NCBI GenBank assembly: GCA_010909165.1 | Contig: VJWM01000221.1 | Span: 62,001 to 126,000 of the forward strand | Direction of reading: 5' to 3' | DNA from: Anthoceros angustus | Taxonomy: Eukaryota; Plantae; Anthocerotophyta | DNA: 64,000 nt | In this document: one piece after another, positions 869-54,285 of the stretch | How the letters are laid out: each line of letters begins with the position of its first letter | Numbering within the stretch: position 1 is the stretch's first letter | Translations under genes and position numbers: made by a program | Notes under the pieces: generated by a model | Seen by the model: the letters and a program-made list of their open reading frames with translations, nothing else | The model's database searches: none | Told to the model about the DNA's origin: nothing

Positions 869-3727
869 ATGGCACAGGCAGGGTGTCTCTTGTGTGCACC
901 GCTGATTGCCAAAACAGTGGATCTGATGCTTCAACAGATGCACCTAGCCAAGTCCAAAGGAGCTCAAGTGGTTGAATTCCGCTTGGACCATATAACAGAC
1001 TTCGATTCGACTCTGGATCTGCGCGCTCTCCTGAATGCAAAAACTCTACCAGCCATTATCACTTACAGGTAGGTGCGGGAACACCGGAAATCGAGGTGCA
1101 GCAAGTTCTCTGGATTTTGAATGTGGTGTTTCAGCGGTCTCTTCAGTGAAGCGAGGCAATGGCGGGTGCAGGCCGAAATGGGAAGGTGGGGAGTATGAAG
1201 GTGAAGAGGCCCCTCGTCAAGCTGCTTTGAGCTTGGCCATCGAGCTTGGAGCTGAATTTGTGGATGTCGAGCTTCAGGTGTTCCTCCCAGACCTTCTGTT
1301 GCTGGCAGAGTGCTTGGTTCTGCCTTCTTGGCTGAAGACCTCCACCCTTCTGTGGTGTTGAGATCCTCTGATCGGAAAAATCTAAAGGGGCACTTGTCAG
1401 TTACACTCAGGTGGCAGCAGAATTTATTGCCAAAACAGAAACGGACCTCCAAGACGAAGATTATCGTGTCAAACCACAACTGGAAGTCCACTCCATCATC
1501 ACAAGAGATTGAGATCTGGTTGCGAAGATACAGGGCACCGGAGCTGATATTGTGAAGTTTGCAACCACGGCAGCCAATATCACGGACGTGGCCAGAGTTT
1601 TGTTAGTTCTTTCCCGTTCTGCTGTAAGCTCCTCAACATTTGCTTCTCCTGCATGTGCCTTTTGTTGACAACAACGGATGGTTGCGCCTTACGGCTGCAC
1701 ATTCTTCCGTGAATTTGCTTGAGTCTCCTTGCAACTGCACAAATTGTTTGTAGGAACTGAAGTGCATTGACTAAGAGGAGGATGGATGGTGCACATTCAG
1801 GGTTCCACTTGCTTGAGTTGGTCTACTGTCAGCATCCACTTGATGGTGTAAACTGTGGAGTTTCATGACTGAAAGGATGTTGAATGTTGTCCTGGCTGCT
1901 TGTGGAAACGTCTTTCTTTCTCAACTTAGGATGAGGTAATGCCTTTATCTGGCATTCATCCTTGTTGGTTCGGTCACAAAAGGTTTTGCTCGGCAATTGA
2001 TCAGATTGGTTGTGATGACAGGTCCCCACTATTGCTCTAGTCATGGGGCCAAAGGAGCTCAAGTGGTTGAATTCCGCTTGGACCATATAACAGACTTCGA
2101 TTCGACTCTGGATCTGCGCGCTCTCCTGAATGCAAAAACTCTACCAGCCATTATCACTTACAGGTAGGTGCGGGAACACCGGAAATCGAGGTGCAGCAAG
2201 TTCTCTGGATTTTGAATGTGGTGTTTCAGCGGTCTCTTCAGTGAAGCGAGGCAATGGCGGGTGCAGGCCGAAATGGGAAGGTGGGGAGTATGAAGGTGAA
2301 GAGGCCCCTCGTCAAGCTGCTTTGAGCTTGGCCATCGAGCTTGGAGCTGAATTTGTGGATGTCGAGCTTCAGGTGTTCCTCCCAGACCTTCTGTTGCTGG
2401 CAGAGTGCTTGGTTCTGCCTTCTTGGCTGAAGACCTCCACCCTTCTGTGGTGTTGAGATCCTCTGATCGGAAAAATCTAAAGGGGGCACTTGTCGGTTAC
2501 ACTCAGGTGGCAGCAGAATTTATTGCCAAACAGAAACGGACCTCCAAGACGAAGATTATCGTGTCAAACCACAACTGGAAGTCCACTCCATCATCACAAG
2601 AGATTGGAGATCTGGTTGCGAAGATACAGGGCACCGGAGCTGATATTGTGAAGTTTGCAACCACGGCAGCCAATATCACGGACGTGGCCAGAGTTTTGTT
2701 AGTTCTTTCCCGTTCTGCTGTAAGCTCCTCAACATTTGCTTCTCCTGCATGTGCCTTTTTGTTGACAACAACGGATGGTTGCGCCTTACGGCTGCACATT
2801 CTTCCCGTGAATTTGCTTGAGTCTCCTTGCAACTGCACAAATTGTTTGTAGGAACTGAAGTGCATTGACTAAGAGGAGGATGGATGGTGCACATTCGGGG
2901 TTCCACTTGCTTGAGTTGGTCTACTGTCAGCATCCACTTGATGGTGTAAACTGTGGAGTTTCATGACTGAAAGGATGTTGAATGTTGTCCTGGCTGCTTG
3001 TGGAAACGTCTTTCTTTCTCAACTTAGGATGAGGTAATGCCTTTATCTGGCATTCATCCTTGTTGGTTCGGTCACAAAAGGTTTTGCTCGGCAATTGATC
3101 AGATTGGTTGTGATGACAGGTCCCCACTATTGCTCTAGTCATGGGGCCAAAGGGAGTGACAAGCAGGATACCAAAATTTCAAGGTTATTTAACGTTTGGT
3201 TCTCTTGGCGCCGGCTTAGAGTCCGCTCCAGGGCAACCTACTTTGCAGGAGCTTTTGAACTTGTACAGACGAGGGAGGATGACACACAGTGCGAAAGTCC
3301 ATGGCATGGTTGGAAATCCTGTCGGCCACAGCAAATCTCCTGTTATCCGCAATGCAGCCTTTGCAGAGACCGGAATTGATGCAGTTTATTTGCCATTTTT
3401 AGTGGACGAGCTGTCTGAGTTTCTCCGGGAGTTTTCTGTGTCAAACTTTGCAGGTTTTAGGTGAGCTTGAAATTTGAAGAGCACAAATTACCTTGAATTG
3501 AAGATGTTCCTTGATTTTTGGCTAATCCAAATTGTTACGCAGTGTGACAGTCCCGCAGAAGAAGGCGGCCCTTAGGTGCCGTGATGAAATTGATTCCGTC
3601 TCGAAGGTCCTGCGCTGTTTTCCTGTTTTTATCTTTGGGTACAGCCCGAAATGATACGCGTTGAGTTGCTTCCAGTTTTTGTCCCCGAGAGTCCAGCTGA
3701 CGGGCATCACGGTGTACAGGCCAATGA
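869..3727 (+). pseudogene. Truncated, internally duplicated paralog of bifunctional 3-dehydroquinate dehydratase/shikimate dehydrogenase (exons 1-5 only)
   Basis: ATG at 869 (MAQAGCLLCAPL..VEFRLDHI, GRCRPKWEGGEYEG, NHNW, KFATTA). Exon/intron structure matches the intact copy at 21854-24591 but with many substitutions. Similarity stops at ~3727 at the start of exon 6. 954-2048 is tandemly repeated as 2049-3146. 1-bp indels break the first repeat copy. Confidence 0.85.
954..3146 (+). repeat. Tandem duplication of ~1.1 kb (954-2048 / 2049-3146)
   Basis: Near-identical copies. Junction at 2049-2055 CCAAAGG, a 7-bp microhomology shared by exon 1 (954-960) and exon 4 (3147-3153). Confidence 0.9.
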
Positions 3728-7506: not shown

Positions 7507-7886
7507 TGTGTCAAGAGGTAAAGATGTTTTTTCAAACATTTTGCTGGAGCAGTTCTAAGTCTCTTGTCTTCGCTGCTCTCAACCCGGTTGCCAATAGGTT
7601 CTTCTGCATCTGCTGTCCCAATTCGGCACGTCAGCTGTTTCTCAGACTCCGATTCAGTGGTGAGATTTTCCTTGAGAAAGCAAGCAGCATACTTGCAGCC
7701 AAATATCCAGGGCGCTATCAGCTGATAATCACGGTGGCTGTGCAGGAGGTTCCCGCCAAGAAGGAACTTGGAAATGTTAGGAAGGGAGACAAAAGGAAAT
7801 CCAAGTCCTCAAAGAAGAAGGCCCACAACGAAGCAAATAGGCAAGGGAACAAATGGAAAAAACAAAAACGCGGGAGGGATGAGTAA
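7507..7886 (+). pseudogene. 5'-less duplicate of the small Lys-rich gene
   Basis: Starts at the duplication junction, lacks exon 1 ATG, ends ...KKQKRGRDE* at 7886. Confidence 0.6.
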
Positions 7887-9121
7887 TATGGTTTTGGCGC
7901 TCTCCGTGAAATTGGGATCTTCATGTAATATGTGTTTGTACATAATTATCTTGATCATTTTATGGGAAGATGAGGTGATTCGAAGAATCTGCTTTCTTTA
8001 AGTTCAAGGGATTTGGCCTTCAATCCTAAAGCGAGATTCATCCACCGCTAACTCCTTATTCATTTACCTACATAATTCCAGTACCGGTAGTACTTTTAAT
8101 TGTTACTGTTTATAAGATCAGTTACTGCATTTTATAATATCTACCAGAAAAACGGCTCGGTATTCCTACTAGGCACTGGCCTAGTCTCAATCTCAGAAGC
8201 AATCAATGCTTCGCACGTAAAATTCGCTCGTGTAAAATCTGGCATGGCATGCCATGCCTTGCCCATCACGATTCTCTCTCATCATGCTATATGTACTTTA
8301 AACACAACACCATGTACCGGTCCATACAGGGATGTCACTGCCATATTTTGCCCAGCACGGCACAACCCCAGTATGCGCACCCACACCACAACGAGGTTGA
8401 GATGTAAACCAACCATGCTTGATTTTAGAACCGTGCGCGACGAGTATGAACTAAGCGCGGGTGTTTTAAACTAAGCCAGCGGAAGGGAGCGTCGCCTCCG
8501 TGGGCGGAAGCGAGGAGGGAGGCGCGGGCGGGAGGGAGGGCGCGGGCGGGAGGGCGCGGGCGGGAGGGCGCGTGTCAGCGGTGGCAGGCGCTCATGACAG
8601 GGGCCATGTGCCATGCTAATCAAGGCAATTGCACTCACAACCACAGTTAAGACAAATCGTATTACGGGCTAACAAAGCAGCATACTTGCAGCCAAAATGG
8701 GAATCGTCCTTATCTAGACACAACCCGTCGCTGTCCCTTTACCAAAGCTTCGCAGAAGAACCCTTTGGGATCCGTATGGCTCAATCGAACAAACATCGGC
8801 AATCCGGTTTCTTCGTGACCTATGCCCCTTTTATCTACCTCACTTTTCGGCGTTCTTGCTGAATCGCGGGCGCCCGCGCCGGGCGCGTGGCCTTCAATCG
8901 AAATCGTGCATTATTGCCCTGCCGGCGTTTGGGCAATAATGCGCCGTGACTCACAATCGATTCGTTCCCTTGATGCCTTGTCTTCTCACACCATTCACAC
9001 ATACCACATATCGCACATGACATACATGCTCACGGGGACACATACCATACCGACCATGCGCATGGTGCACATACACATTAATCCCGGACATCCAGATGCT
9101 CCACGCGTATGCGGCAATGAA

Positions 9122-11088
9122 TGTCGCGGTGGCATAGCGCTCATGACAAGGGGCCATGTGCCATGCTAATCAAGGCAATTGCACTCACAACCACGATTAA
9201 GACAAATCGTATTACGGGCTAACAAAGCAGCGGTCTGGCGGCAAGAGCGGTCCACGGTATTCCTGCTTTTGGGCGCACTTTGGCATTCAAATCCATAGAA
9301 CCTACGATAAAATCTTCGAAACATGCTATCGCGTAACTGGGGTTCAGAAGGTCGCTCATGCTCTGTGCGACCCATGGCCAACAAGGCGGCCACCCGCCTT
9401 TCTTCAGGATCAAAGTACTCGTCCACCTGTGCCTTTCCCAATCGCTGCTTCTCTCTAGCTCGATGACGAGCCATCAGTTCCTCTTCTTCGTCACTGTCGA
9501 GCTCCGTTTTTACCCTGGCAAGACCTGGTCCATTCAACCCATTCACGTAGTATTGTTTTTCAATACACTGAGCACGCAAGTAATCGCCAACATTGTTATT
9601 CAACAAGTACCAGCATTCAGAAGTCGGTTCATCCCATTCCGAATCCACGTGGTAGACATGTAAGCGGTAGATAAAAGGCCCTTGGGTAGCCAATGGCATC
9701 TGCCCGCTTTCTCCGATGCAAGTGGGTGAGCCACAAAATGCGCCAAATCGGCGGTTTCTCTGTTGTTGTAAACGAAATCCTTCTTGAGGCGGTGATCAAA
9801 ACACGGTGCATGAAGAGGTGATGCTCCAACTTTCAAACGCTCCTCACGATGGCGGGTCGGACAAATGTTTGTCTATTCATACCTCGCCCTGCAAGCTCAA
9901 ACAAATCCCTGTGATCATACGGGAAGTTCTCGATGTTACATGTCTCATGATGAGACTCCACATATAGCAAAAACGCTTGTAGCTCTAAGAATGTTTCTGG
10001 CCTCTCTGGTTTTCCTGGATTGTATTTGCGGACCAAAGGAACCCGCCACTTGTCCTCCCAAGGACATTCAGGAAATTGAGGAACACTATCTTTGCGATCT
10101 TGAGCGGTTTTGCGAGTGTAATCCGCCTCTGGATCCATAACAAGCCAACTATCCTTACGAAGGTAGGTGATTCTGACTTGCATCGACCCCAAACCTAGCG
10201 GACCGACTCCACAAGAGCGTGCCCCTCTTGGCAATCGGTGACACCATGCATGAGTCAATTTCCCTTAGCAGCTGCAAAGCAAACGAACCACGCTATGCAG
10301 CAATGAATGTCAGCAGCGCTTTCAGTGCACCATGGCGCCTTAACAACTCTTCACCTGTCGGAAACCTCCCACGCTCTCACCGTTAGCTAGGCCTTCAGCA
10401 CCTTGGCGTCCGCATCTGATGCCAAGATGCACGCGGACACATTGTCACGGCGCACCAATCGATGCTTGCGCGCCTTTACCCCCGCTAGCTTGCGCTCCTT
10501 GAGATCGGTGGATGCGCCTTGTTGGCAGCTACGGCAATCCCTTACAGTCGTGCAATCCTCAGATTGGGTTTTGACCGGCCGTCAGTGCTTCTTCGTCCCC
10601 AAGACCTTTTTGCCACTCCACCGCACTTGTCCCTTTACCATCGGCCACACCCGTCACGGCCCGAGACCCCACTTTAGACAAGGAGCCTGGTTCTTCAACA
10701 AATCTCACACTCTCCCTCGTGTCATCCGCTTGATCACCCTTCACTCTCCACAGCGCGTTTGTTGCCGGACAACGGCCGGGCTTTTGTGGGTAACCCTAAT
10801 TTCTTGTGGCGGGCCGACTCGGGCGGGTGACATCTGAGCTCCCGGCAATGTGAAGGCACCGATGGCAAAACCAATCTCCATCCGGAATCTCTTTGAGCGG
10901 TGGGCGCAAACAAAAGATGTGATACCCACTGCTGGTCACGGAGGAGCATTAGTTCGGGATGCGTGATGTGGCCACAAGAACCGCAAGGTAGGTCAGCGGT
11001 GGCCTCCACGCTTGTGGTTGCGTCCTTGTGTCAAGGTTGGGTAGGTGACAAGGCGCGGATGCGCATGTGCTCTTTGCATCGGCGACCA
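9122..11088 (-). repeat. Candidate ~2-kb 3' LTR of the Gypsy element (partial second copy ~5658-7506)
   Basis: Follows the PPT. Imperfect inverted termini: TGTCGCGG at 9122 and GGCGACCA ending 11088. The first 8 bp recur at 17826, at the expected 5' LTR position. Confidence 0.5.
9166..10350 (-). pseudogene. Frameshifted ORF of unknown function inside the candidate LTR
   Basis: Overlapping ORFs 9833-10258, 9600-9836 and 9166-9699 join by 1-bp shifts into one protein-like frame (WEDKWRVPLVRKYNP..LYVESHHETCNIENFPYDHRD..LHAPCFDHRLKKDF..WDEPTSECWYLL..ELDSDEEEEL). A matching degraded copy lies at ~5730-6860. The 5' end is uncertain. Confidence 0.45.
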
Positions 11089-48716: not shown

Positions 48717-49500
48717 GGTGGCTCTACTCTCCCGATCTGTCCTGCTACGTGCGCACCTTCATCGACCAATCTAATTACGTACTCCGGCCCGACAGATTCG
48801 CCGAATCTCTAGGTTTGCTCATCGAAGGCGAGGCCGTGGCCGGCGGACTGGCCTGCGGAGCCACACCAGCCAGAGATCGGAGCAACTGCAATACTAGCAT
48901 TGGAGTAGCATCACTCTGCATCAGTTCCCATAACTGCAACACCACCACAACAAGACAACTCTCAATACAACATCCCTCCGTGCTCCACAGCTTCACAACC
49001 GCCTACTGAGCTTCGTTCCATCAGCAGCGGTAGCATCCGCGCGGCAGGACTTACAATCGCAAACACGTCATCCCTAATGCTGAGGCCTGCCAGTCGCGTA
49101 AGCTCCAGCACCTGCAGTTGCTCGGCAGTGGGAGCGTGCTTGGCGCAGAGCGAGGAGAGCGCGCGAGACGGAGACTGTGCTGGCTCCTGTGTGCCGGAAC
49201 TGCGCCAGCGACAGCGTGAGCATTCCGACGATGGCAGCATGTGGCTCCCCAACGCGAGAGCGGGGAAGGAGGGTAGATGCAGGGTTTGAGGTAAGTGAAA
49301 CGAGACACAGCATCTTCACACACTCAGGTGGCGAGTCGCGTGAGTCGCGTGAGTTGCGTGAGTCGTATGAGTCGACGCCGGCCTTGTCGATTCGTGAATG
49401 AATTCGGTGGCTCAACTAGTTTGAGACGTGCGATTCGCACTGCCAGTTTGTATGTAGTTTATGTACATGAATTGGGCGAGCAGATGTGAAGCCACGATTG

Positions 49501-52500
49501 CTACAGAACGTGGGAAACCGGGACGATCATCTCCAAGCCGAGTTGCAAGGCGCTCTCGGACTTGTCAAAATGAGGATCATGTGGGAAGAGACGTCTTTGC
49601 TCCGCACTGGGCTTGGCCAGCCACGACCAGTACACCCAGGCTGCTGCCATCACTGCTGCGGTGGACAAAGCTGCCAAGCTCCCGAAATGGGCCACGTCGT
49701 TTGCGACAATGGCGACTCCCAGCATCACCAACTCTGCCAAGCTTGCTAAAGACACCTCCGTTGTGCCGATCAGATTGGCCTCTGACACAGGGATGGCCGT
49801 CTGAAAGATCTGGGCATCCACCATGTCGTAGGCCCACTGGCCTAGCCTAGACATAACCTGGATGGTCATGGACATGGCCATGGCATAGCATGTCAGTTTT
49901 GATACGGGTTTCTGAAGGAAGACAATGGTTGGAGACGGGGTTGGACTTACTATGAGGGAGAGGAACACAAAGAGTGATCCCTTGTGGCCAAATGGGTTGA
50001 ACAAATATACACCTACTGCCATAGCAAGCAGTGAAGCCTGGAAGGTGAGGGCGGCAGCTCCAGACTGCACAACGTTTGGCAGAGTGAGATCAATTTTCGA
50101 GAGCTGGCCATGAGGGTTGATGAAGGAGCAGACGGGTGATTGGGTGCTTACCCGCAAGACGCCGAGCTTCGAGATGAGATTGGCAGATACAAATGTGGCA
50201 GCGAATCCCATGAGGGCGCAGAGACCCCTGAACGTGCCCACGACTGAAGGACTCAAGCCTGCCCAGGAGAACAATGGCAAGTCAGTGGAGTGATTGAAGA
50301 GCTGCCACTGCTAGGGCTGGTTGATGCAAGCCAGACGCTCACCTCGCTGAGTGAGGAATGTTGTCATTAGACCACCAGGGGCCAGGACGGCGTTGAAGTA
50401 GAGAAGCACGTATGCTAAACTGGCAGGCAGGACAGGCTGTGCTAGGTACTTCTTCCATCCCAAGATGACGGAGTTGGAAGGTTTTCCTGTGAGGGAGGAG
50501 ACAATGCAGGCCGCAGATGTCAAGGTGACTGGAGCTCAGAGAACGTGAAACGGAAAGTTTGTGGTGGAAAAAGGTACAGACCTTGCACTTCCTCGGGGCT
50601 CCAGCTGGATGTCGGTCCAGAGCTAGAACCACGCTGGGGGACATGTTTTGGTCTGTTCAAAGCTCCACTTGACACTCTGTCTGTCCGGAAAACCAGAACG
50701 ACCTGCAGGATCCCCCTCACAGAGCTGGGTTTCAAAAAATTGGAATACGTCCTGAGCAAAGGTGCAACCGAACGAAGGTTGAGCACCACTGTGGAACTCA
50801 CCAACAGAGGAAGAGAGATGACCATAGCGCCAACCGCCACATACAGGCAGGTTACAGGATTGAAAGCTGATAGCAATATCCCGAAGGCAAAAGGACCAGC
50901 AATCTGAAACAAAAAGGAACAGATGTTTAGAAGTCCCCACAAGGCTAGTAACAGCGACAATGAAAGCCAGTGGCTAAGATCTCCTATTACCTCACATATC
51001 AGATCCACTCGCCGCAGCATTGCATTGGCGTTGGCTAATGCAATAGGGCGGTTTGCCCCTGCCAACTGCATGGCGTGATGCACTCAGTCAAGAGATTGAA
51101 TGGCTGTTTGAATTCCCACAGGACGACCTAGGCATGACCTTAATGCTTACCAGCACAACCCAATCCCTTTCAAATGCAACTCCTGTCGCTAATCCGGTAA
51201 GCCTTTCCACACTTCCGGCCAGGACGAGAACAATGAACCATGGCTGGAAAACTAGCGCAGACGCAGTAGATGCAACTGCAACTCCTTTCCTAAGCGCTTG
51301 AATAGTAACACCTGCTGACAAGAGCATGGCTGCGGTCTGCAACAAGTTTTAGGGAACGCTTTCAGATAAACTCCCAGATGGTTACAAATGATTTGGTCCG
51401 TATATTGGCAGCAGACATAGAACCTTCACCTGAATAGCACTCAGAGTGTTGAAGGACACGACTCTTGGCATGGAATCCATCAAAGCCCCCACATATGGCC
51501 CCGCTGCAAATATCACGAGCTGCCAAAACACAAACAGCGTGTTGGAAACAGACATCCCAAGCTGGCAAGGTTATGGAACTGAAACCATACACTGGTTTCA
51601 GATGCAGACTTCGGAGTGAACAAGCTATCCATCAACAGGTTACTGAAGCGGTGGGGAGGGTGTGTCTGGTCAGCTCGGCTCGGCTCGGCCTAGTTTAGAA
51701 GAGGGACTCAGCACACACCAGTACTGGAGTAGACCTACCTGACTTGCAAAGCTGACCACTGCCACCGGAAGGAGGCTATGGTGCAGGAGGGCCACCAGCG
51801 CAGGCCAGGCAAAGTGCCAGGTATGCTCCACAAAGCACGATGCAAAGTAGCTTCCATACATAGCTGAAGGACGCACGGAGACAATGTGAGAGAATGGAGG
51901 TTACCTGGCCCACAAAGCTGACAACGGCCACAGGCAGGAGGCTATCGTGGAGAACCGCAAGCACCACAGGCCAAGCAAACCGCCATACTCGTTCCATAAA
52001 GCATGACACCACATAGGTGACATACATGGCTGAAAGCCACGGGAATCCACGCCAGCAAAACATACTATTTAGCTGAATGTGGCCCTTGCATCTACATCCT
52101 GACATCAAATCATCCCACTCCCAACAACAAGACTGAAAAGAAGGAAATTCGTTTGCTGCATTCCGCATTTCCATAATCCATTCTGCCATGCCATCATACC
52201 GTTCAGGCCATCAGGGTGAGCCGGTGTGGCAGCAAGTGCCTTCTGCTCTTCCAGAGACAGCACCTGCAACAAACAGAGACAGCACTCAACCCACCATTTT
52301 CAATCTCCAACCCACCACCTCATTCTCCGCCCATCACCCGACCTTGCATGAACACCAAATGCCCAACAAAACCCAACAAGACCCACACCTGCACATCCAA
52401 AAGGGGCTCCGCAGTCCCCTCGAAAACCTCCTGCCCAGCCTCCGCCCTGGGCAAACAGTGCCCCGCCTCCGCACCCCCCAGCAGATCATGCGTCTCGATC

Positions 52501-52966
52501 ACCGAAGGAGGCAACAACGACACCCTCTCGTCTTGCAAGAAGCTCTTGGGATTAAACCTCTGCTTCCTGCATGCACCAAAAGCCCCCCGTCACAACCACC
52601 CCACGCCTCATCACCCCCCGAATCCCCACACCCTGCATCTCCTCCCGCCCAGTACCTGGGCAGCAGCAGCGGCGTCCAACCCAGTCGTGCAAATCCCTGC
52701 CTCCCGCCCCTCCGCCGGAAGAAGACCGTGACACCCCTCCTCCCGCTCCGATCGCCATGGCGGGGGCAGCAGCACCGCGTCCCCAGCCGGGGCGACGGCG
52801 CCGCCATGAAACACTCCCCATCCCCCACCCCTCCCGCTCCGCTCCTCACCACCTGCAGACTCCCCGGCGCTGAACCGGGCACAGCCCACCTCGATCTCAC
52901 CTCCCGCAAGCTGTCTCGCACGCAACCCACCTTCTCCCTGCTCCAATGCACGCAACCCAACACCAT
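49501..52966 (-). CDS. IREG3: Solute carrier family 40 (ferroportin) IREG3/MAR1-like transporter, probably plastid-targeted, with duplicated exon pair
   Basis: [97 protein letters not shown]. 5' end uncertain (ATG 52966 is tentative). Confidence 0.9.
51739..51863 (-). other. IREG3 alternative exon B (125 bp): [42 protein letters not shown]
   Basis: Acceptor CCTTCAG| and donor CAG|GTAGGT; same length and phases as exon A; only 41 nt from exon A. Confidence 0.85.
51905..52029 (-). other. IREG3 alternative exon A (125 bp): [42 protein letters not shown]
   Basis: Acceptor CTTTCAG| and donor CAG|GTAACC; open and in frame with both flanking exons. Confidence 0.85.
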
Positions 52967-54285
52967 GGCCGCGCCCGAGCTGCCCCCTCCCACCCCGCCT
53001 GCTGCGTTCCCGTTCCCGTTCGGTGCCCGCCAAGCCACCAGCCAAAGCCCGGCAGCCAGCGGGGGCTCTTCGACGAGCCAACTGTCTGATTTCCGCGCCG
53101 TTCCTTTCGGTTCCCCTGCCGCCGGCTTATCCAATCACCTTCCCTCGAATTCTACACAACAGCCAATGCAGCCCACCGCCAGTTAGTCTCCATACCCCAC
53201 TATGTAGACAGCGCAGAGGAAGATTCTGGCCGGAATCAGATGATCCAATCTGGGGTGGGCCGTGGAGGGAGCAGTCCCTGGCCTCCAGGCCTTTGTCACC
53301 CTGCCGGGGGGCCCCACCGGCATGGCAGCCATGCGTCCAATGCCCTACCGCGTTACATGGAAAGGACGCAGCCACGTAGTGTGAAGAAGAAGCAGGAATT
53401 CCAGGAATTCTATTGAATTCCAGTCTAGAGGACTTGGTAGCTTGCCAACTTGGAACATGGGTGTGAGTAGGCTACTTGCATCCTTCGTCTCGGGGTAGAT
53501 GGGATTTCCATCTCTTTGTTTTATATGAAGTCTCCTCAGTGGGCCGCATTGGTCATTGGTCCATAGCTCTGGGCGTGTCGGAGGAAGAGCCACAAAATCG
53601 CGAGCGGCCGGACAACCGTGCACATCGCCGCTGCCTGCTCCAATGCTCTTCGCTCCTTCCAGATCTGCCCCTCCATTACGTTGCATTGAACGGGGCTTTC
53701 GACCCAACGTCGCTGGGATTCTATTTGCTTCATAAAGCGTTGGGCAATCTTGGTCAAATTTCGTGCGTTGGAAGGTGATGCAATAAAATCGGGTTTGCTA
53801 CATATTGGAACACACACCCAAATTTGGCATGGGTAGACAAGGTGGATTAATATTAAAAATATTATTTTCAGATATATAATTTTCAGTTGATTTAACACAT
53901 CATCAACTTCAACTCTCTAGCTAGATGCAATTGTTTCTTCTTGTCCGCACCTCCTTGCCCCCTCAGGTCCAACTGTCACAACAGGGCTTGCAGCTCACTC
54001 TGATGTGAGGTAGTTGTCCTAGGCGAGGACACCTCCTGCCTGGTGAAACGGCATAGACGGTCTCTTAGCTGCCGACGCCGTGGCTGGGGCTCCTTTGAGG
54101 ATGTAGACATGGTGGCTATTAGCTTACGCTCCACACACTCCCTCTAGAATACACTCAAGGTGTACAAGAAGAAGAGAGGTATCGCACACTTGTGGCGATA
54201 AGGTTTCTCCAAGGCCCTCAAGGTTAAATAGCAAAGGAGGGTGGTAGGGGGCATAGAGCAGCTCCGAATGAGACACTCGCAGTGG

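Follow-up and report, generated by a model that had tools for sequence, protein, structure and literature searches.

A mutually exclusive exon pair encoding helix 1 of an organelle-type plant ferroportin, and its occurrence in land plants

The ferroportin gene and its two homologous exons

The window analysed here, a stretch of 64,000 nucleotides from the hornwort Anthoceros angustus, carries a ferroportin gene (FPN3/IREG3-type) on its minus strand at 49410..53200, delineated by transcript joints, the assembled coding sequence and matches to PF06963 (FPN1), with 13 exons per isoform. Five exon-bearing open reading frames match PF06963 at 25.7-91.8 bits (curated cut-off 24.6), among them each of the two alternative exons alone. 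The closest full-length homologues are annotated as "solute carrier family 40 member 3, chloroplastic"; the best full-length matches (58-62% identity) are member-3 proteins of Selaginella, moss and seed-plant origin and not of the FPN1/FPN2 type, and GDRMW-type proteins are much weaker matches, the query of this search being an intron-containing open reading frame of the window gene and not its spliced protein. In a tree built from the protein outside the alternative exons the window stands among the land-plant member-3 sequences (support for the land-plant branch 94/64). Helix 1 is preceded by an N-terminal extension of more than 170 residues, and its Glu, Trp and Phe (the latter two in a Trp-x-Phe motif) are invariant in our alignment A1 and present in both window exons. 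These comparisons place the gene in the organelle-type FPN3/IREG3/MAR1 clade of plant ferroportins, with export activity predicted; the first-pass annotation had named it a plant ferroportin of the IREG3 type, and both Pfam and the closest homologues agree. The window's first exon shows indel differences from the RNA contigs.

Read along the minus strand, the region of interest begins with a constitutive exon (52200..52263) ending in ..PAHPDGLN plus one nucleotide, which in our transcript run X1 is joined to 52029 (exon A) and to 51863 (exon B). It is followed by an intron of 170 nt (52030..52199; joint 52029>52200, with CT..AC ends on the plus strand) and by exon A (51905..52029), which encodes an A-type transmembrane helix 1 (TM1) and contains the codons for Glu (51992-51994), Arg (51989-51991) and Arg (51980-51982). 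A spacer of 41 nt (51864..51904, GT..AG) separates it from exon B; no joint removes this spacer in any run, and it holds a candidate branch motif, TCTCTCAC, 17-18 nt from the donor. Exon B (51739..51863) encodes a B-type TM1 with the corresponding codons for Glu (51826-51828), His (51823-51825) and His (51814-51816). A 219-nt intron (51520..51738; joint 51519>51739) then leads to a second constitutive exon (51430..51519, LVIFAAGPY..), joined in X1 to 51739 (B) and to 51905 (A).

Exons A and B are both 125 nt long, are preceded by AG and followed by GT, are spliced to both neighbours, and read without stops in the frame that the upstream exon (donor after 52200) dictates; as adjacent homologous exons they share length, phases and canonical splice sites. 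They are identical at 88/125 nucleotides (70%) and 27/42 amino acids, their codons differing by 10 synonymous and 15 non-synonymous changes. This similarity is not due to chance, because each exon alone matches FPN1 positions 7-46 (A, E=6e-8; B, E=6e-6). The window holds no third copy, and the flanking introns, searched for a copy or remnants, yielded neither. The first-pass annotation had described the pair as two stop-free homologous 125-bp exons with the same phases, AG/GT borders and a 41-nt spacer, and its coordinates and properties hold. The ten other introns of the gene, with borders from transcript joints, measure 84-125 nt, and the two that flank the cluster 170 and 219 nt.

Either-or use of the exons in transcripts

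Run X1 consists of assembled transcript contigs from the same organism, 100% identical to the window. In this single run we found the four joints 52200-A, A-51519, 52200-B and B-51519, with depths of 23.2 for exon A and 37.8 for exon B, whose sum is close to the 59.1 of the shared exons; exon A accounts for about 38% of the transcripts. The X1 contigs contain neither an A-B joint nor one that skips both exons, a statement to be read with the proviso that assembled contigs drop rare forms and that A+B or skipped transcripts at a low level could escape. A frame of 493 codons is kept only by the A-only and B-only forms; those with both exons, with neither, or with a retained spacer run into a stop after 65-105 codons. 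Exons A and B are spliced in a mutually exclusive manner. The earlier claims that either exon joins the same flanking exons in frame and that double inclusion shifts the frame are borne out by the four joints and by the early stop of the A+B form, and the junction mapping proposed with them, carried out on contigs, places both exons in transcripts with the A-B joined form absent. In run X2, from a sister species (organism B), exon B is spliced to both neighbours (depth 194/50) and is the only isoform seen spliced, exon A occurring only in an unspliced contig; the proportion of A differs between X1 (38%) and X2 (not seen spliced), the two runs representing different species.

As to how exclusivity may be enforced, 125 is not a multiple of three, and transcripts with both exons, neither exon or a retained spacer meet early stops and should be sent to nonsense-mediated decay. 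In addition, the donor of exon A and the acceptor of exon B can probably not be used together in one splicing reaction: a steric block appears likely because the 41-nt spacer is less than half the length of the gene's shortest normal intron (84 nt is the minimum for its other introns), the putative branch point being guessed from the TCTCTCAC motif. Such an arrangement is known from exons 2 and 3 of alpha-tropomyosin, where so short an intron lies between the exons that its donor and the following branch point cannot work together. The present pair resembles it in its short spacer of 41 nt with a candidate branch motif about 18 nt from the donor. Unlike alpha-tropomyosin, the pairs of Selaginella, Ceratodon and Sphagnum have spacers of 55-96 nt; steric exclusion would therefore not be the conserved mechanism and, because of these longer spacers, frame incompatibility appears to be the conserved safeguard. 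The steric argument put forward in the first-pass annotation accordingly fits the spacers of 41 and 48 nt (window and related hornwort-like contig) but not the longer ones. Related motifs, CTCTCTTAC and TGCGTA(G/A)TTCAG, lie in the spacers of the hornwort-like contig, Ceratodon and Sphagnum. A competing RNA pairing between the donor of exon A and the Trp-codon region of exon B (I2, I9; pairs in the predicted fold) was considered and rejected: the fold is no better than that of shuffled sequences (z=-1.63, 14/200 shuffles equally good), and its core follows in any case from the splice-site consensus together with the Trp codon.

Occurrence and age of the pair

The search for orthologues proposed in the first-pass annotation found two 125-nt exons in the order A then B, with AG/GT borders, in a related hornwort-like contig (L011, spacer 48 nt), in Selaginella (L006, 55 nt), in Ceratodon (L001, 69 nt) and in Sphagnum (L007, 96 nt). 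Both isoforms are already present in public annotation for Selaginella (XP_024529777.1 and XP_024529778.1), Ceratodon (locus M758_5G099300) and Physcomitrium (XP_024365668.1 and XP_024365669.1), and both occur in transcript assemblies; we found no paper in the searchable literature that describes these isoform pairs or the conservation from bryophytes to a lycophyte. In Physcomitrium one paralogue retains the pair, while another is without exon A, the donor of which is destroyed. A second exon was searched for at the Marchantia, Diphasiastrum and Closterium loci and none was found; the A-type sequence, which represents the ancestral form, is the sole exon in algae, liverworts and Diphasiastrum. 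In ferns the A-type survives as a separate gene (P0182, P0306), and the sampled clade proteins of seed plants and ferns are of one type only, 105 of them with Trp-Asn, in a comparison made at the level of proteins. The isoform pairs of Netrium and the Logan P0004 cluster are not exon swaps. Among the Zygnematophyceae, the exon of Mesotaenium is B-like and that of its sister sequence P0004 A-like. A region-limited homologue search with exon B gave one match only, since too few words were shared, and a second full-length search added almost no further bryophyte sequences.

Both exon types are under purifying selection. The dN/dS values per exon, likewise suggested earlier, are 0.09-0.27 for both types in most orthologous comparisons, and 0.63 between the A exons of the window and the hornwort-like contig, where sites are few. 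The latter value could be taken to mean that only exon B is functional and that A is a decaying duplicate, included now and then as splicing noise, as could the B-only splicing in the sister species, the 23 B against 2 A contigs of Physcomitrium and the one paralogue of this moss that truly is without exon A. We hold this reading to be most improbable: exon A makes up some 38% of the X1 transcripts, has remained intact, at 125 nt and with good splice sites, in five lineages that parted hundreds of millions of years ago, has the low dN/dS values just given in most comparisons, and is of the ancestral type, the only one in algae, liverworts and Diphasiastrum. Between the window and the sister species exon B shows 0/126 differences and the other coding exons 46/672; there are 5/343 differences (1.5%) in the unspliced stretch 51835-52177 and 257/3763 in the locus as a whole. 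The intron 52030..52199 belongs to this stretch of 1.5% divergence from organism B.

In the exon trees (41 columns, with groups named after the tree was seen) all land-plant B exons form one clade with the fern and seed-plant type (support 90/87). AU tests speak against separate duplications in mosses (p=0.02) and hornworts (p=0.03) but leave a sister relation of A and B in Selaginella standing (p=0.07). This last result would suit an origin by exon duplications that happened separately in hornworts, in mosses and in Selaginella, in place of one ancient event, and so would the greater likeness of A and B in the hornwort (70% of nucleotides against 56-57% in Sphagnum or Selaginella) and the weakly supported position of window A next to the B clade. 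Repeated duplication is nonetheless very unlikely given the order, 125-nt length and phases common to all five lineages, the type-diagnostic residues they share (Arg/His at position 13, Gly/Ser at position 40), and the B clade and AU tests for mosses and hornworts; for the extra likeness in hornworts the simpler explanation is partial gene conversion. The latter is also suggested by FAWP, which the hornwort A exons have in common with the B-type. The tree from the rest of the protein left undecided when the fern A-like and N-type genes split. Taken as a single event, the duplication dates by these comparisons to before the common ancestor of bryophytes and vascular plants, in which the pair was present, to be lost or to decay later in some lineages, and helix 1 of seed-plant FPN3/MAR1 descends from the B-type exon. 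This land-plant age did not figure in the first-pass annotation.

Helix 1, its possible function, and known systems

The locus is very probably best explained as a mutually exclusive pair that arose by ancient tandem exon duplication in an organelle-type plant ferroportin (FPN3/IREG3/MAR1 clade). Each mRNA carries A or B and yields one of two full-length transporters differing in 42 residues only, namely those of transmembrane helix 1, of the short loop that follows and of the first part of helix 2 (human ferroportin residues 27-69). The human S1 metal site is defined as D39/H43 (PMC12594662). When the 41-residue exon peptides were searched by themselves against PDB sequences, nothing useful came back; the profile of full-length relatives that was needed instead aligns gap-free to human ferroportin 8DL6 (E=4e-52), placing the plant Glu on D39, Trp on W42, Phe on F44 and the variable Arg/His on H43, in accord with the equivalence assumed in the first-pass annotation. 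The H43-equivalent is His in exon B and Arg in exon A. A-type exons have Arg there in every species, and Arg is the common state of the clade in algae, bryophytes and lycophytes; it is not the departure for which the Arg of exon A had been taken. The acid plus His pair ascribed to exon B is present in the window, Sphagnum, another moss and Selaginella, but other B-types have Tyr (the hornwort-like contig) or Arg (Physcomitrium, Ceratodon), and H43 itself is not conserved across ferroportins generally. The sole A/B difference constant in the five two-exon species is Arg (A) versus His (B) right after the Glu, at the R40-equivalent.

The isoforms differ beside the conserved acid of helix 1, the counterpart of the human S1 site, the A-type reading Glu-Arg-x-Trp-Arg and the B-type here Glu-His-x-Trp-His, with Tyr or Arg last in some lineages. 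Such a switch could alter the N-lobe binding site in its charge and in its chemistry towards metals or protons, and one gene might then provide two transport behaviours; a switch in metal specificity is what we infer from these residues. The S2-site residues are lacking in the plant clade, C326 aligning with Gly and H507 with Met, and the animal metal-site model may not transfer to it. It is possible, if on balance unlikely, that both isoforms are real and differ elsewhere than at the substrate site: in folding, membrane insertion, packing of helix 1 against helix 2 or helix 5, partner binding, or stability in two organelles. The 15 changed residues lie all along helix 1, the loop and the beginning of helix 2, the H43-equivalent varies within the B-type, and Arabidopsis FPN3 is reported to be dual-targeted to chloroplasts and mitochondria (10.1101/2020.07.15.203646). 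Against this, the only fully type-diagnostic charged position adjoins the invariant helix-1 Glu aligned with D39, and the N-terminal exons common to both isoforms imply the same targeting sequence.

Both isoforms are expressed, both exons are constrained, the pair is traceable to the ancestor of bryophytes and vascular plants, and between the sister species the cluster, introns included, has changed far less than the remainder of the gene. It offers a clean system for learning how plants enforce and regulate either-or splicing and what the residues around the ferroportin helix-1 acid do; Physcomitrium combines precise gene targeting with a paralogue that has the pair and another that has lost exon A. 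The pair also explains the origin of helix 1 in seed-plant FPN3/MAR1, as a B-type exon. To our knowledge, validated mutually exclusive exons are scarce in plants, and conserved alternative splicing that changes an active region instead of triggering decay is scarcer still. As a tentative further step, one organellar ferroportin gene in the first land plants may already have encoded two transporters through either-or splicing of helix 1 (Arg/Arg versus His/His beside the metal-binding acid), with different metal or proton coupling. Hornworts, mosses and Selaginella would have retained this switch for over 450 million years, ferns would have divided it between separate genes, and seed plants would have reduced it to a B-derived form. 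If true, the event would rank with the most ancient protein-changing alternative splicing events known to be conserved in plants and would amount to a natural experiment on the S1 site of ferroportin.

We know of no hepcidin system in plants. Helix 1 of human ferroportin (8DL6, 6W4S) is gap-free to that of the plant protein, which has Glu for Asp at S1 and keeps Trp42 and Phe44; His43 is present in exon B and replaced by Arg in exon A and most relatives, and at S2 the plant clade has Gly and Met for C326 and H507. Arabidopsis FPN3/IREG3/MAR1 belongs to the same protein clade as the window gene and has a long N-terminal extension before helix 1, and helix 1 of seed-plant FPN3 (Glu-Gln-x-Trp-Asn) groups with the B-type exon; unlike the window gene, the seed-plant and fern clade proteins sampled show one type, the A-type of ferns being a separate gene. 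Kassiopeia predicts mutually exclusive exons by criteria of length, phase and homology, and genes with such exons are rarely reported in Arabidopsis (PMC3923563). Like other tandem-duplicated mutually exclusive exons, A and B are an adjacent homologous pair of equal length and phase, each found alone between the same flanks and of a length that breaks the frame on double inclusion. Unlike the cases of the Kassiopeia class, they form a ferroportin pair in plants that has been kept from bryophytes to a lycophyte.

An exon pair in transcripts

The ferroportin gene occupies roughly 49410-53200 on the minus strand, its ORF pieces matching the Pfam family FPN1 (PF06963). Between an upstream exon that ends at 52200 and a downstream exon that begins at 51519 lie two exons, A (51905-52029) and B (51739-51863), both on the minus strand, 125 nt long, bordered by AG and GT, and open in the frame of the upstream exon; in all these details the first-pass annotation was right. 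They agree at 88 of 125 nt and 27 of 42 residues; of the codons that differ, 10 do so synonymously and 15 non-synonymously. Each exon alone matches positions 7-46 of the FPN1 profile (E=6e-8 for A; 6e-6 for B). No third copy or remnant was found in a search of the whole window. The spacer between them (51864-51904) measures 41 nt, less than half the length of the gene's shortest other intron; the remaining ten range from 84 to 125 nt, and introns in the window, whose G+C content is 49%, are about 90 nt long.

RNA and genomic contigs from four runs were aligned to 49400-53200. The transcript contigs from the same organism are 100% identical to the window and recover the entire exon chain. Exon A is joined to both shared flanks (52200 to A and A to 51519) at a depth of 23.2, and exon B (52200 to B and B to 51519) at 37.8; their sum is close to the depth of the shared exons (59.1), which is what two branches of one transcript population should give, and they correspond to about 38% and 62% of transcripts, respectively. 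Neither a joint removing the 41-nt spacer nor one skipping both exons occurs among the aligned contigs, and the spliced CDS with either exon yields a full-length ferroportin. The pair is real, expressed, and mutually exclusive, as had been claimed from the sequence, and the junction count that was proposed to check it gave the four single-exon joints and no A-B joint. In the first coding exon, the same RNA contigs carry one additional C after 52780 and two after 52871; the window's reading frame between these positions, and hence the translated N-terminal targeting region, is probably wrong or polymorphic.

A sister species (X2, RNA contigs ca. 93-95% identical) shows B as the sole spliced isoform, exon A lying within an unspliced contig that covers 51835-52177; genomic contigs of two sister species (X27 and X28) span the whole stretch. 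Exon B of X2 differs from the window at 0 of 126 nt, compared with 46 of 672 positions (6.8%) in the remaining coding exons on that contig. Across the 343 nt of the unspliced contig, which takes in part of exon B, all of the spacer and of exon A, and 148 nt of the intron upstream, there are 5 differences (1.5%), against a genomic average for the locus of 257/3763 (6.8%). By a simple binomial, the chance of no difference in 126 nt at 6.8% is about 1e-4. Constraint of this kind, at silent and intronic sites, is expected of a regulated alternative region.

Reading frame and spacer

Exclusivity is enforced by the reading frame. With A alone or B alone the frame runs for 493 codons; counted from the upstream exon, a stop follows after 105 codons when both exons are included, bearing out the claim that double inclusion breaks the frame, after 104 when the spacer is retained, and after 65 when neither exon is used. 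The exons measure 125 nt wherever the pair occurs, so the frame incompatibility is common to all the lineages. Only in Selaginella does retention of the spacer stay in frame (55+125=180), and RefSeq models the resulting form as an isoform labelled X1 (P0272, 634 aa; Selaginella locus L006, 2538-2842), whose frame runs from exon A through the 55-nt spacer into exon B, so that helix 1 is present twice. This 634-residue product is unlikely to work as a transporter.

Steric interference across the short spacer had been put forward as a second mechanism. Goodall and Filipowicz are said to have found in 1990 that plant introns shorter than about 70 nt are poorly spliced. Steric exclusion is plausible for the spacers of 41 and 48 nt, but it cannot be the general rule since those of other lineages measure 55-96 nt. 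Complementarity links the exon A donor region to exon B at 51895-51909/51816-51830 (15 nt, 87%) and 51901-51910/51803-51812 (10 nt, 90%), and the donor pairs with exon B in the predicted fold; this was rejected as evidence of competing RNA pairing, the fold energy being no better than that of shuffled controls (z=-1.63).

The spacers of the hornwort-like contig L011 (1425-1472), Ceratodon (L001, 4821-4889), and Sphagnum (L007, 3793-3888) have in common a CU-rich CTCTCTTAC motif and a 3' end of the form TGCGTA(G/A)TTCAG, with the counterparts TCTCTCAC and TGCGTCCTTCAG in the window (51864-51904). These motifs could represent the branch site of exon B and a site at which its use is regulated, which we offer as a lead and not as a result. 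Their sharing across hornwort-like and moss spacers is unexpected of neutral intron sequence so old.

Distribution and age of the pair

An exhaustive search with the exon-bearing ORF as query, and a follow-up search, discerned three types of helix 1: the A-type (..CFMERVWRF(A/G)LP..) of algae, bryophytes, and lycophytes; the B-type (..CFVEHTW(H/R)FAWP..) of bryophytes, Selaginella, and some Zygnematophyceae; and a fern and seed-plant type (..VEQxWNFAWP..). Five genomic loci have two 125-nt exons with AG/GT borders in the order A then B: the window (spacer 41 nt), L011 (a 16-kb contig of a relative with ca. 74% protein identity; 48 nt), Selaginella moellendorffii (55 nt), Ceratodon purpureus (69 nt), and Sphagnum jensenii (96 nt). 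The ortholog comparison proposed by the first-pass annotation accordingly recovered the same pair in all four other loci. On L011, a gene for a potassium transporter of the KUP/HAK type (Pfam K_trans; 7774-10781) follows a few kb downstream of ferroportin.

Public annotations list XP_024529777.1 (A) and XP_024529778.1 (B), each of 574 aa, for Selaginella; both isoforms at locus M758_5G099300, and at the allele in another strain, for Ceratodon; and XP_024365668.1 (B, 23 transcript contigs) and XP_024365669.1 (A, 2 contigs), each of 617 aa, for Physcomitrium patens. Sphagnum gene models use A in S. magellanicum and B in S. jensenii. While one Physcomitrium paralogue retains the full pair, another (L009, CM009320.2) keeps B intact together with a decayed exon A about 65 nt upstream (L009, ca. 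3280-3330), whose 3' half can still be aligned to Ceratodon and whose donor is destroyed (CAG|GT to TAT|AT). A single exon is present in Marchantia and Diphasiastrum (A-like) and in Closterium (B-like); among sequences compared without a genomic locus, that of Mesotaenium has the B-like form and its sister, P0004, the A-like form. The ferns Adiantum and Ceratopteris carry separate ferroportin-3-like genes with an A-like (P0182, P0306) or an N-type (P0167, P0325) helix 1, which fits gene duplicates replacing the exon pair, the tree leaving the timing undecided.

Orthologous comparisons, also proposed at the outset, gave dN/dS values of 0.09-0.27 for both exon types, except for exon A of the window against that of L011 (0.63, on few sites). 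A tree built on the 41 residues that the exon encodes unites all B exons of land plants with the fern and seed-plant type in a single clade (support 90/87), the A-type forming an ancestral grade. AU tests, run on just these 41 columns with groups named after the tree was seen, disfavoured A and B as sisters in mosses (p=0.02) and hornworts (p=0.03), with no significant result in Selaginella (p=0.07); for these reasons we give the tree less weight than the anatomy that the pairs have in common (exon order, length, and phases, together with the diagnostic residues). Most simply, the pair dates to the common ancestor of bryophytes and vascular plants, since it is present in bryophytes and in one vascular plant. 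Hornwort A exons have the B-like FAWP and are closer to their own B partner than in other lineages, a likeness that points to some gene conversion. The protein tree places the window's protein among land-plant sequences, outside mosses, liverworts, lycophytes, ferns, and seed plants.

Helix 1 and the metal site

The alignment of a profile built from 21 relatives to human ferroportin (8DL6; E=4e-52) is free of gaps. The alternative exon corresponds to human residues 27-69, covering helix 1, the next loop, and the first part of helix 2; the Glu, which is invariant, is equivalent to D39, Trp to W42, Phe to F44, and the Arg/His position to H43, as the first-pass annotation had it. In cryo-EM structures metal site S1, which is required for iron transport, is made up of D39 and H43 (PMC12594662). 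On this alignment the proteins of the plant clade have Gly and Met in place of the S2 residues C326 and H507, which leaves the helix-1 site as the only apparent one of animal type.

Directly after the Glu, at position 13 of the 41 residues (human R40), the five species with both exons all have Arg in A and His in B. At position 16 (human H43) A has Arg in all five; B has His in the window, Sphagnum, and Selaginella, Tyr in L011, and Arg in Ceratodon, and further B-types have His (moss P0300) or Arg (Physcomitrium). The direction first proposed, with exon A departing to Arg, is reversed: Arg is ancestral in the clade, and it was the B-type that brought His beside the acid. We infer from these residues that switching between A and B may alter metal choice, affinity, or proton coupling.

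Our literature search turned up no published account of alternative exons for helix 1 in a plant ferroportin; both isoforms, though already annotated publicly in three further species, appear to be undescribed. For Arabidopsis, reports of mutually exclusive splicing were rare, with none described at that time (PMC3923563). What makes the pair remarkable is its age and its position at the putative substrate site of an organellar iron transporter. The splicing arrangement itself is of a known kind, of which the ferroportin pair is a newly recognised case.
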